Origin: Oikopleura dioica
Lineage: Eukaryota > Animalia > Chordata
Direction: 5' to 3'
Assembly: GCA_907165135.1 (NCBI GenBank)
Contig: OU015566.1
Location: forward strand, 8,990,001 to 9,054,000
DNA: 64,000 nucleotides
Shown here: piece by piece, positions 1,764 through 6,989 of the stretch
Position numbering within the stretch: the stretch's first letter is position 1
How the letters are laid out: the number at the start of each line of letters is the position of its first letter
Translations under genes and position numbers: made by a program
Notes under the pieces: model-generated
What the model was told of the DNA's origin: nothing
The model's database searches: none
The model's input: only the letters and a program-made list of their open reading frames with translations

Positions 1764-3599
1764 TCAAACATCAGAGAACATTTGAAGCTGAGTGTGAGGC
1801 ATGGCGATGTGAGATGATCCGATGTAAATATCGGAAGTAAATGAACAAGTATTTTTAGATGTAAACCAGCTCGAAGAAGCCTTGAAAGTTTGATTTGAAA
1901 GCTCGTATGCTGCGCGCATCTCAGAAGGAGCAACTCCTCCGAGGATAAAAACAACTGTCTTTCGCTTTTGAGTTCCAGATTTTAAACTAAATTTCAAAGT
2001 AGAGAAGAGCACTTGAAAAAAAGATTCACCTTGACATCTTGGGCTTGACTGATTGAATTTTATTGAAAATCCTCTCATCAAGTTCTCCCACCTGCGCGAA
2101 ATGGATCAAATCGGTGATTCGCGATATGTATCTGGAGTCTGTGAATTTTATGTCTTCCTCGTTCTGTTTTCTTTTCGGCATCTTTGTTACGATTGGCAGG
2201 TCTTTATCGATAACAGTTGCATTGAAATATCGCATGTTCTTGACGATCTTCCACTTTTCTTCATGGATACCAGCATTTTTCAGCAATTGATTGATCTTTT
2301 CTTCCTCGAGGCCTTTCTTATTATGGCAAAGGAGAAGAATGAGACGCATCTTCATCTCTTCTGATAATTCCTTGTTTAAAATCCAAGGAATTACAGCTTT
2401 AATCGGCTTATCTGCTGAATCGCAAGCAAGATCTTGCTCCGCATCGCACAAATCATCAATCCACGAATCATAATTTCGATCGAGCACCTCTGAGATAGAA
2501 ATGTGCCGTTCAAGTTCTTGAATTTGCTTCTGAAAATGCGGAAGGCGGCGCATCAAGTTTGCGAGAGATTTAGTCGAGCCATCAGACTTGTTCAATCCAC
2601 GCTGTCTAGCCATGAGGTCATCGTATTTATTAGCTAATTTTTTCATCACATCTGCCATGTGTAAATGCCTGAGGCTTGCCCATGTCTTGTCCTCGGTTTC
2701 ATCAAGAAGTAGTTGTCTATCTTCAACTGTGACGATGTCTCCATCAGCTCGGAGGACATCGTAAGCCATCGCCTGATAAGTGAGTTCGTGAAGAAGAGGC
2801 GCGAAGGGATCGTAACTTCTGTCAACAATTATCAAATCGCCGATAGTGGAGGCAAGTCTTCCATTCTGGTTCAACTTCTTTCTGGTCAATGAAGCCAGGT
2901 CAACGCAATTGCATATTTGAGACTGAAAGTACATGTCGAAATCGCCACCAAGGGCGATGGCAACGGTATTGAGTTGCTCGGCCAGCCTCTCTAGTTTCCT
3001 CTGACGATAAGAGTCATCGATTATTCGTTTGTAAAATTTAGGCTCGTCCAGAAGAAAGACGCGGGACTCAAAGGGCAGGAACGCAACATCTATTTCGCGT
3101 AATGAGGAAATCTTCTTTCCAGCTCGAGATGTTGCGATGAAGGAGAAAAGATAATCCGGAAGGCGATCAGTGAGATAGAGATGAATGCCTATACGAAAAC
3201 CAAAAGTGAGTCTTCCATGATTTCACAAAGGAGCACACTCGTTTTAGTTTTTTCACACATTCACTCTTCAATTACATTTATACTGGTCTCTCTTCACGAA
3301 ATCATCAACAACGATGCTCAGGGACATTCTTGTTGGAGTGATGAAGTAAATCGCGTCGACGTCTGGCATCGGCCGCCTTTTTTTATTCAAGTCCTCGACA
3401 ATTACGATCTTTTCTTTCAACAAATCGCTCATCTTTGTCGACTGCGAAAGGATCTTCGTTGTCATCGAGTCAAGAACAAGGACTTTCCAGTTGTCATCCC
3501 TCTCCAGCTCGAAGATGTCCTTGTAAACTCCTCAATTGAGTTGAAATTTTATCCTCGATACAGTTAGTACGTACTGTTGGCGACATAATCAACGAGCAT
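1764..3599 (-). CDS. Divergent Sec1/Munc18 (STXBP) paralog, tandem duplicate
   Basis: [83 protein letters not shown] and IGSSHI motifs; frame intact across 3 introns. Confidence 0.9.
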
Positions 3600-3998
3600 A
3601 TTTTCCCGAGCGATTTACTTCTCTAAAGGTCAACTAGTCAACGCCTTCTATTTTTGATTGCACACATTTTTTGCATGTATGAATGTCTGTAATTTTGTTG
3701 TCACAAATGTTTAGAATATTTTTTGTGATTATATAAGAAGTTATAGGGCTTAGTTTACGACATTCAGCAGTATATTTAAATAGTATTTATGTTAAGACGA
3801 GAAGAATATATCCGTAAAGTGATGACGTAATCGTGCAAGGTACGAAAGAACGAAATGTTAAAATTGGCTTTTTGAAGAATAGGGTTTGAAGCGAATGAAA
3901 TAGTCAGAAATGGTATTTTACCGAATAATTGGAAAAATAAAGGAAGTGTTTTATGTTTGTTTTACGAAGAATTTCTCAAATAGGAGCGACTTAAGGTA

Positions 3999-6989
3999 TC
4001 AGCCGTATTTAGCAAAGGCTGGGTTGGAATATGCGTTTGAATTTTGATTTGTGTTGCGGTTGATGGTGGCCAGAAATGGATCTAAAGAAAAATATCTTTT
4101 TTCTCTCGTTTTAAAGGCGATCGTGTTACCATATTTTTGAGCATCGTCTAATGTCGATAGGTCATGAAGGAAACTAGAAGGGGTGATCATCTTATGGGAC
4201 CCTAAAAAGGTTGAGTTTCTGCTGTATAGTTTTGTACATGCAAATTATGTGACGAGTAATTTCTTGTTGGCTTTTCTACAATTAGTAAGACATTTTATGA
4301 GACTGACAAATGGGATAAAAAAGCTTGAGCGATAAATCGACAACATCTAGTCACCTATTCTCCGTAATCATTGAAGCTAACTTCTGTGACTCGGGTCAAA
4401 TCGCCCGTCATATTTAGAAAATCTCTCGGTCGAACCAGGTGCGTTGATCCTTTGTTTGTGCAATTAGTTTTTTGAAAAGACAAAATTGTTTTTGAATTTA
4501 ATTATCGAAGACTTACCGACGAGAACTTCCCACTTCTCTCTGGCTTGATTATTTCCGCGGCCACCACTTCTCTATAACAAGGTTACTATGAGTAAACAAT
4601 TGCTAAGAGGCCAAGGTTTGGCTCTAGAGTTACTAATGCCGAAGAGCGACTAATGCGTAGGCGCAGCTCTGGGCACACAAAGTGAATGAAAAGGCTGGCG
4701 AATTTTTACCTGAGGGACGTAATCGCGGGATACTTCGTACGCGCACCGCATTTCAGAGCACGTCAATCCGCCAAGAACGAAGAGGATGATTCGAGGCCCC
4801 GATTTCGCCTCAAGCTTGTCGCCATCTTTTTTATGCCAGTGATAACGCGCGCTAGAAAAATCTTTTTAAAACAGTTATTCAAGCAAGCTAGACTCCTGGT
4901 GAATCAAATTCTGGCTACATAAATTGTATGATCAGTGTGATAAATGAGATTTAAATCATAATTGAATCAGATAATTGCGGTTCTAAAAGATACCTCGCGC
5001 CTTGCGCTTGCTGACGCGCACTTTTTGCTTCGCCACTAGAATAAAAATGCTTTTTACTTGACCTTCTTCTTTGGGATTTGTCTCTTTTGCGAGCCAGTTA
5101 GTTTTAAGTTAGGTCCTTTAGTTAATTTTTATCTGATACCCTGCGCTGTAAAACCGTCGACGAGCCTCTTTATTCCTTTCAAAACGGAGCATTCGAAAGA
5201 AATCTGCGCTCACAGACTTTCTTCAAGAAGAGTACATCCTTTTATCTACAAAAAAAAAAAACGTACCTTCTCACACCACCAGTAGACACCATCGGACGAG
5301 TTCCCGCGAGAAATTGGAAAACACGGTCGTCAAGTTTACCGTCTATCGCATACTTGCAAAATTTATTGACTTCGTTTCAAAAATATTGTTGTAAAGTACC
5401 TCCATAACGTCCTTTATACTAGGGATAAATCGGGAGAGCTGATATTTGACTGATGCTGAGCGATCTTTTCTGTTGATAGTTGGTGGCTTTTTGCGACCAG
5501 AGTCCATGGTAATAGGGACGTTGAGTTTCGCCATGTTTCGGATGATGCACTCATCCTTTTCCATGATTTGAGCGTGAGACACGAGCTTTGAAAGGTTCTC
5601 TTCTGTGATGCCGCCCTTGTTGTAGATGTACAGGAGGATAATTCTGATTTTATCGAGAGCATCGACGTTTCTAAAAAGCTAGTTGGAGCTTGACTCAACG
5701 AAAGACTTTCGTCGAAAGTCAACAAACTTACGAATCTAGTAGGATCGGAATGATGTTCTTCATGGGTTCTTTCAAGCGTTCACGATCACTAGTCTCACCA
5801 GTTGCCAGATCTTGCTCCACCTTGCACAACTTCTCCACGTTCTTCGAGTACTGCTTTTGACAGGCCTCAACAATGTGCATATGATTCAGATATGCTTGGA
5901 TCTCCTTTTGGTACTGTGGCATCGCCTGCATCATCTTTGACAAGTCCTTGATCGAGGCGTTTTCGGAGGTCTTGTGTCGCTTTTCCTTCGCGAAGTTCTT
6001 GAATCGTTCCGGGATGGTTCTCATGCAGTCAGCGATGTGGTTGTGGCGGAACTCGTTCCACAGAGCATCATTTTCATCGAGGATGACTTCCTTTTGCGTT
6101 GTCTGGCCTCGGTCATTCGTCGTTTCGTATCGCATCACATCGTTGTCGATATCAAGCAGATCTTGTGCCATAGCTTGGTAGGTGAGTTCGTGAACGAGAG
6201 GAGTAACAGGATCGAAGCTTCGGTCGATGATGATCAGTTGAGTTTGATCCTTGAACGCACCCTCGCCCATTTTGGGATTATCAGCTTTAAAGCCATTCAG
6301 CTTTGCTTGTAAAATATTCGCGAGTTCCACTGCATTCTCGGACCAGCTCTGATGGCGAATGGAAGGGTACTCTCCAAGCAAGCTACACAATGTAGCCAAC
6401 TGTTCGGCATAACGCTCGAGGGTTTCGACACGCGCAGCTGGATCGCTCGAGTTGTAGATCCGCTTGAAAGATTTTTCATTGTCAAGCATGTAAACTTGTG
6501 ATTCATAAGGTAAAAAGGCGATGTTGATTTCTTTGAAGGTTCTGATGAATTTGATGACCCGGGAGCTTTTGAGCTCGTCCATGTGGTAGTCAGGGACGGT
6601 ATCAGTGAAGTAGAGATGAACGCCAGTGTAGGTGTTGCGCGTTTTAAAGTCATTGATGAGCTTCGTTATGGACTCGTCGCAAGGAGAGATGAAGTAAATT
6701 GCTTCCATGTTGGTCATCGGCTGACGGGTCTTCGTCAGATCTTCAATCAATGTGATTCGCTCTTGCATAACGTCCGTCATTTTGCAACAGGAAGACAAGA
6801 TTCTTGTGGATAGACGGTCCAGCACAAGGATTTTCCATTTGTCTTCTTCTCTTTGGTCCCGGATGACATCTTGCAAGATTTCTTGAAAAAAAAGGGTAAG
6901 TTTGAGTACTCTTCCATGATTTCAAAATTGTGACAAATTAACTCTAAAGTAGACTACTTACTTTGCCCGACAAGCTGTTTCAACGCCAT
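3999..6989 (-). CDS. STXBP1: Munc18-1/STXBP1 ortholog with probable alternative exons
   Basis: [10 protein letters not shown]|ILQDVI...[80 protein letters not shown]; terminal exons at 4355-4449 and 3999-4201. Confidence 0.95.

Follow-up and report, generated by a model that had tools for sequence, protein, structure and literature searches.

We examined a stretch of 64,000 nucleotides (nt) from the genome of Oikopleura dioica (assembly GCA_907165135.1, contig OU015566.1, positions 8,990,001 to 9,054,000), referred to below as the window, which carries a Sec1/Munc18 gene on its minus strand. The large coding exon of this gene matched the Pfam Sec1 family with E=3.9e-93. When it was searched against solved structures (PDB), the best match was Syntaxin-binding protein 1 (STXBP1, E=5e-126), as compared with 1e-24 for Vps45 and 1e-19 for Sly1, and the STXBP1 score was also far above that of Vps33. 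The top named homologues of the same exon were tunicate and vertebrate STXBP1. These matches place the gene in the Sec1/Munc18 family and in its Munc18-1/STXBP1 orthology group, and by sequence it is the O. dioica orthologue of Munc18-1/STXBP1. At its 3' end lie two alternative exons, A and B, which provide the protein with two different C-terminal tails. The features are collected in Table 1.

Table 1. Features of the STXBP1 gene in the window. Positions are counted from the first nucleotide of the window; aa, amino acids; UTR, untranslated region. L001 is an mRNA contig, P numbers are public proteins and X numbers are RNA runs.
Feature	Position	Strand	Evidence
Munc18/STXBP1 orthologue (by sequence)	3800-6900	minus	Sec1/Munc18 gene
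Large coding exon, 382 aa	5731..6876	minus	Pfam Sec1 and solved-structure matches
Last constitutive exon, ends ...KWEVLV plus first base of Gly codon (phase 1)	4517..4571	minus	sequence; RNA joints 4571>4710 and 4448>4516
Intron from constitutive exon to exon A, 67 nt, gt..ag	4450..4516	minus	joint skipping 67 nt in 6/15/25 reads of X10/X11/X12
Exon A, cassette, 95 nt, own TAG flush with donor	4355..4449	minus	translation; P0150; L001; third-position differences
Intron from exon A to exon B1, 153 nt	4202..4354	minus	reads crossing from 4354; A-B join in L001; one UGCAUG at 4237-4242
Exon B1, start of B tail; untranslated when exon A is included	4130..4201	minus	translation; A-skipping reads; P0146
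Intron inside the exon B called earlier, 48 nt, in frame, GT..AG	4082..4129	minus	lacking in L001, P0146, P0144, P0147 and P0156
Exon B2, coding part, ends ...AFAKYG then TGA	3999..4081	minus	translation; L001; public proteins; X1 contig covers 3882-4073
3'UTR common to both isoforms, at least this far	3802..3998	minus	aligns with L001 3'UTR; X1 contig reaches 3882

The split Gly codon (phase 1) can be completed by exon A or by exon B, each of which then codes for G-S-x-x-x-x-x-P-x-x-F-L. A preliminary description of this locus, made from the letters of the sequence, had proposed exactly such a layout, with two in-phase acceptors behind a phase-1 KWEVLV-G, and the minus-strand sequence confirms it. 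It had also placed a TAG codon at the very end of exon A, straight before a gt donor. This too is borne out by the sequence: the exon is made of 2 bases, 30 codons and the TAG (4357-4355), with gtgact following immediately, and its tail is 31 aa long. The end of the upstream exon had been put at 4514, which is 3 nt off, as the exon closes with GTCG at 4517 and the intron (4516-4450) opens with gtaagt. Exon B had been described as running without interruption from 4201 to 3999. Its start, directly behind a tttttag acceptor, and its stop were both correct, but the exon is split by an intron of 48 nt (4129-4082), which is lacking in L001 and in every B-type protein on record. This intron is in frame and contains no stop, and it is therefore invisible to a reader without RNA. 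Because it is spliced out in L001 and in P0146, the B tail is 51 aa long (P0146:592-642) and not 67. Retention of the intron would lengthen the B tail by 16 residues and so give a possible third isoform; no such retention was seen in the spliced contig L001 or in the B-type proteins on record.

Expression of the two tails was followed in three bulk oligo-dT RNA runs labelled with the species name (X10, X11 and X12) and one plankton metatranscriptome (X1). The bulk reads were only 88-95% identical to the window, which assigns them to a sister lineage and not to the window's strain, and their exon B2 sequence matched the Norwegian-type protein P0147. Besides the joint from the constitutive exon to exon A (Table 1), we found 8, 12 and 19 reads in the three runs which stopped matching the window at 4354 and went on as the orthologue of the exon B start (G-SHSMITPSSF). 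Skipping of exon A was seen in two ways: as reads which ended at 4516 and carried the exon B start as their continuation (4 in X10), and as joints 4039>4516, present in 1, 4 and 1 reads of X10, X11 and X12. The share of skipping reads varied by run (roughly 5/11, 4/19 and 1/26), and junctions containing exon A were the majority in all three bulk runs. All the joints that follow from the layout of the preliminary description (upstream exon to A, A to B and upstream exon to B) were thus present in the RNA of the sister lineage. In addition, five reads of X12 continued past the exon A donor (4351-4354) into unspliced, lineage-specific sequence, so that either the intron is retained there or the transcript has an alternative 3' end directly beyond exon A.

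Assembled transcripts and proteins gave the same picture. L001, an mRNA contig from a close O. dioica lineage, runs through the A tail and its stop and then into exon B, and so does L006, from a species about 70% identical. Since both reads and contigs run in the order A, stop, B, exon A is a genuine cassette, and exon B has a second role as 3'UTR. In the Okinawa annotation (OKI2018_I69) the gene has two models, g2402.t1 (P0146, B tail, 642 aa) and g2402.t2 (P0150, A tail, 622 aa), whose tails are identical to those of the window. Proteins with either tail also occur on independent metatranscriptome contigs, those with the B tail being P0148 and P0156, and the B-tail protein has been called in the Norwegian annotation as well. 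Both splice forms exist; reads, contigs and proteins agree that A and B are both used. For the window's own strain the support comes from the Okinawa annotation and from one X1 contig over exon B2 and the UTR, and the origin of the junction reads in a sister lineage counts against extending them directly to that strain. The Norwegian annotation holds a B-tail protein only (P0144, P0147; 583 aa). As the reads of the lineage with Norwegian-type exon B2 show the A form as the majority, isoform A is missing from that annotation.

We compared the window with L001, the mRNA of the diverged lineage, and sorted the differences by codon position. In exon A, 7 out of 8 differences were found at third codon positions (P=0.0026). 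For exon B the figure was 13 out of 17 (P=0.00034) and the insertions and deletions were in frame. The 17 differences in the 3'UTR were split 6/6/5 over the three positions, with 5/17 at the third. Both reading frames are thus under coding constraint. Selection on both excludes two alternatives, namely that exon A is noise and that exon B is nothing more than UTR. The first of these alternatives would make exon A a non-productive exon, whose premature stop lowers Munc18 output and whose tail has no function. The stop of exon A does precede two more exon junctions, and the B1-B2 junction lies 72 nt beyond it, which could invite nonsense-mediated decay; in vertebrates this pathway follows a 50-55 nt rule. 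Such an exon would not be expected to dominate the junctions of all three bulk runs, to vary between lineages almost solely at third codon positions, or to encode a protein tail that is conserved in lineages 70-75% identical (z=10-15) and in Ciona, and we regard this explanation as very improbable. The second alternative, that exon B is 3'UTR only and is never translated, with the B-type models being annotation artefacts, is less credible still. It is true of the mRNA that includes exon A, in which exon B is untranslated, but reads join the constitutive exon straight to exon B, the differences in exon B have the third-position bias and in-frame indels given above, and B-tail proteins are found on the independent contigs and in the Norwegian annotation. 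The B tail furthermore retains the bilaterian consensus TPxxFLxDLxxL.

For the structure search, the full-length public isoforms P0146 and P0150 were used in place of the short tail peptides. In this context both tails aligned to the structured C-terminal segment of solved Munc18-1 and Munc18-2 (residues ~568-588). The alignment held as far as residue ~588 in rat Munc18-1, and Munc18-2 aligned too. This suggests that the fold is kept, with change confined to the distal end. Of the two tails, B keeps the bilaterian pattern and A is the derived one. Searches with the tails alone were uninformative because the peptides are too short: the exon A peptide had no match among solved structures, and the doublecortin matches of the exon B peptide (E ~0.5) were at the level of chance and were rejected. 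No Pfam domain was detected in either tail. The structure alignment also revealed an insertion of about 14 residues in the loop before KWEV, without counterpart in rat Munc18-1. It is coded across the last constitutive intron, by the 4517-4571 exon together with the last part of the exon before it (4711-4851), and this intron looks lineage-specific.

In vertebrates, splicing of STXBP1 exons 19 and 20 produces the forms Munc18-1a (M18L, 603 aa) and Munc18-1b (M18S, 594 aa) (PMC4583478, PMC4667524). Genomic loci of other animals, retrieved by an exact look-up of their proteins, were scanned for the KWEV motif and for terminal exons. The phase-1 intron after KWEV[LI][IV]-G proved to have an identical position in all of them, namely in Ciona, Clavelina, amphioxus, a hemichordate, Lingula and a bird. 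Ciona intestinalis (L002) has two terminal exons behind it, the first ending ...LTKTISFRD before its stop and the second reading GSTHFWQPNELL..., and they correspond to the RefSeq isoforms X1 and X2. An equivalent pair in Ciona, on which the preliminary description had made its case depend, is therefore present, in the genome order A then B and behind the same phase-1 intron. Clavelina lepadiformis (L007) likewise has two, the first ending ...RLNRTVVFEAD before its stop and the second reading GAPNIWQPNLFL... (RefSeq X2 and X1). In the bird Cuculus canorus (L005) exon 19 is followed by exon 20 and both open with (G)STHILTP. The vertebrate tails given in the preliminary description proved correct at this locus, and so did their GSTHILTP prefix, here encoded twice, in exons 19 and 20, behind the phase-1 intron; the duplicated unit is therefore the same in bird and Oikopleura, and the two layouts mirror each other exactly. 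Two terminal exons were also found in Branchiostoma lanceolatum (L003) and in Lingula anatina (L008), where there is an identical extra copy of the second, and a single one in the hemichordate Glandiceps (L004). The Lingula copies (L008 31084-31146 and 33873-33935) lie 2.8 kilobases (kb) apart with identical flanks, so that the duplication is either very recent or an artefact of the assembly.

Among appendicularians, a lineage 70% identical expresses both the A and the B tail, and a lineage 75% identical has only the A tail on record. In appendicularians, Ciona, Clavelina and bird alike, the A-like exon precedes the B-like one. Taken together, pairs are present in all three chordate subphyla and in all of the ~5 tunicate species or lineages examined (two ascidians and 3-4 appendicularian lineages). 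The pair is conserved across tunicates. An NTF2-domain gene adjoins STXBP1 in both Ciona (L002 7503-8950) and Clavelina (L007 23432-25662), a conserved microsynteny which could help to anchor the orthology of the locus.

In order to relate exon A to vertebrate exon 19, distal tails (past the first 12 constrained residues) were scored against shuffles. The O. dioica A tail matched the A tail of Ciona (z=4.9-5.3, shuffle P=0.0005) and bird exon 19 (z=4.0-4.2, P=0.0035), but gave no significant score with bird exon 20 (z=-0.1) or with the B tail of Ciona (z=0.9). The match with bird exon 19 rests on VSF[NE]D, in keeping with the preliminary description, which had named a VSF(N/E)D motif common to exon A and the vertebrate tail. 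O. dioica, a second appendicularian, Ciona and vertebrates all carry the broader form of this motif, [VI]SFx[DE], close to where the first exon ends. The A tail of Ciona scored z=7.4 with that of Clavelina and z=4.9 with Styela, and the A tails of tunicates form a clear group. No pair of B tails scored above z 2.7. The sequence support for equating A with exon 19 is modest. Stronger arguments than sequence are positional: the same intron in the same phase, the order of the exons, a stop in the first of them and the nearness of this stop to the exon end. In O. dioica the stop of exon A is flush with the exon end, and in the second appendicularian it lies within 1-2 nt of it. In mammals the included sequence is 110 bp long and holds the stop, exon 20 then being 3'UTR (PMC4583478, PMC4667524), and by arithmetic (2+35x3+3 = 110) the mammalian stop should be flush with the exon end as well.

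The switch is real and is a conserved one of the a/b type. The presence of a pair in each of the three chordate subphyla and in every tunicate examined favours a single origin at or before the tunicate-vertebrate ancestor, and we infer that the Oikopleura pair descends from the ancestral pair of STXBP1 exons 19/20 (Munc18-1a/b), which would make the switch older than the split of tunicates and vertebrates. Common descent of the tunicate and vertebrate switches is likely, if not settled. The claim of the preliminary description that the duplicated-exon switch predates this split has stood as far as the conservation of the pair and the likeness of the layout are concerned; descent from one pair is not proven, the tails being short and the match of A to exon 19 modest (z~4). 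The Oikopleura genome has discarded most of its ancestral introns, and the ancestral phase-1 intron may have survived this loss because the switch needs it.

Several observations weigh against common descent. One-to-one orthology (A with exon 19, B with exon 20) rests on distal tails of 15-25 residues, which are too short for proof. Between ascidian A tails and vertebrate exon 19 the similarity does not rise above noise (z=1.3 for Ciona A and z=-0.5 for Clavelina A against bird exon 19), and Clavelina A fits bird exon 20 equally well, with z=5.2 obtained through LN[RK]T. In Ciona and Clavelina no donor follows the A stop, so that exon A of ascidians, instead of being a flush-stop cassette, may be an alternative last exon, and in the bird the nearest GT donor lies 14 nt past the exon 19 stop. 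A stop flush with the donor was considered as a universal rule and was dropped, as it fails in bird, Ciona and Clavelina. Finally, the pairs of amphioxus and Lingula have distal tails unrelated to A or B, from which it follows that tandem duplication of the terminal exon may recur.

These points are those expected if the last exon of tunicates was duplicated in tandem independently of that in vertebrates, so that the switch, though real, would owe its common layout to a convergence favoured by the conserved phase-1 intron just before a short terminal exon; the single exon at the hemichordate locus is also in line with this. We consider convergence a possible but less probable explanation. It leaves to coincidence that the derived tail comes first and the ancestral-like tail second in appendicularians, ascidians and bird, that [VI]SFx[DE] recurs near the first-exon end in the four groups named above, that the stop sits no further than 2 nt from the exon end in two appendicularians and, on the arithmetic above, in mammals too, and that a pair is present at every tunicate locus examined. 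The Lingula pair, the unrelated tails of amphioxus and the single hemichordate exon point either to an older event with losses or to an exon that duplicates easily. A bolder proposal would count the switch among the oldest conserved alternative-splicing events of synaptic fusion, dating from the chordate ancestor or, in view of the exon pairs behind the same intron in amphioxus and Lingula, even from the bilaterian one, with a conserved phospho-Ser motif in the first-exon tail and an equally old Rbfox-type element downstream of the cassette driving inclusion; we hold this to be rather unlikely.

In the mechanism that we propose for the switch, inclusion of exon A would end translation at the TAG formed by the last three bases of the exon, yielding the A tail of the 622-aa form and leaving B1 and B2 as 3'UTR. 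When exon A is skipped, exon B1 would complete the split Gly codon instead and provide the B tail of the 642-aa form. The first ~18 residues of either tail (G-S-x-H-x-x-x-P-x-x-F-L-x-D-L...) are predicted to rebuild one and the same structured C-terminal segment of domain 2, so that only the distal end, which is probably flexible, would differ. The Ser of the mammalian RVSFED is Ser594, a listed phosphosite (PMC4583478). O. dioica, Ciona and one other appendicularian have the corresponding Ser of [VI]SFx[DE], but Clavelina and the 70%-identical species lack it. The distal A motif may be the counterpart of the mammalian Ser594 tail and, hypothetically, a candidate regulatory site.

Concerning the control of exon A, the downstream intron contains a single UGCAUG, 113 nt from the exon. 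This motif is rare in the window (P=0.023 for the intron), and Ciona has one UGCAUG at +101 nt. In mouse, the alternative exon of Stxbp1 is a reported splicing target of RBFOX2 (PMC10676425). Inclusion of exon A may thus be helped by an Rbfox-type UGCAUG, a lead that was noticed post hoc. Nova-type YCAY clusters were not enriched around exon A.

Directly downstream of the STXBP1 orthologue, on the same strand, lies a second and far more divergent Sec1/Munc18-like gene (1764-3465). It gave a Pfam Sec1 match of 5.8e-13 on 3271-3465, and a 302-aa open reading frame at 2026-2934 (queried as 2029-2934) matched solved STXBP1 with 7e-39. This paralogue has one C-terminal exon, ending ...DIYIGSSHIAMPHTQLQMFSDV before its stop, with neither the phase-1 intron nor a second tail, and the phase-1 intron is accordingly kept only in the Sec1 copy that uses the switch. 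Between the two Sec1 genes, a block of 37 nt (3567-3603) is covered by RNA reads of runs X10 and X11 which carry unrelated sequence on both sides of it. It looks like a small exon and is possibly the first exon of the downstream paralogue.

The mechanism is that of the known STXBP1 a/b switch, and public annotations already contain the isoforms of Oikopleura, Ciona, Clavelina, amphioxus and Lingula, which makes for a modest practical gain. In the open literature, our searches returned no description of the STXBP1 switch outside vertebrates. Two papers that describe the splicing for mammals only report no more than subtle effects of Munc18-1a versus Munc18-1b on short-term plasticity, syntaxin-1 binding and localisation (PMC4583478, PMC4667524), and the functional difference between the two forms is still poorly understood in mammals. 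If the switch has indeed persisted for over 500 million years, even in a genome that sheds its introns, each tail must have a job of its own that is maintained by selection. With their tiny introns, few neurons and fast genetics, Oikopleura and Ciona would offer a simple system for finding the functions of the tails. The switch also offers a concrete reason for the retention of the ancestral phase-1 intron.

Compared with vertebrate STXBP1, the Oikopleura switch has in common the orthologous gene, the phase-1 intron after KWEV[LI][IV]-G and the tandem exons, each restarting with (G)S-T-H...P..[FL]L. In both, the first exon is a stop-containing cassette with [VI]SFx[DE] in its tail, and its inclusion turns the second exon into 3'UTR. 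They differ in the sequence and the length of the tails (31 aa in Oikopleura against 36 for A, and 51 aa against 27 for B), in the 48-nt intron that splits the Oikopleura B exon, and in the first 8 residues, which are identical between the vertebrate exons but diverged between those of Oikopleura; in addition, brain-region specificity is known in mammals. Ciona and Clavelina (RefSeq models X1/X2) share the terminal exon pair, its order and the intron, and their A tails align well with that of O. dioica (z ~5 for Ciona). Unlike in Oikopleura, however, their A exons have no donor at the stop and may be alternative last exons with their own polyadenylation, and their introns measure 0.8-1.5 kb as against 67 and 153 nt. 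A further known system is exon 5a/5b of SNAP-25, likewise a tandem-duplicated exon in a gene of the neuronal fusion machinery which gives two near-equivalent proteins; in mouse it is reported to be Rbfox-regulated together with Stxbp1 (PMC10676425). The SNAP-25 exons are mutually exclusive internal exons of equal length, whereas in Oikopleura a cassette carrying a stop decides whether the next exon is read.

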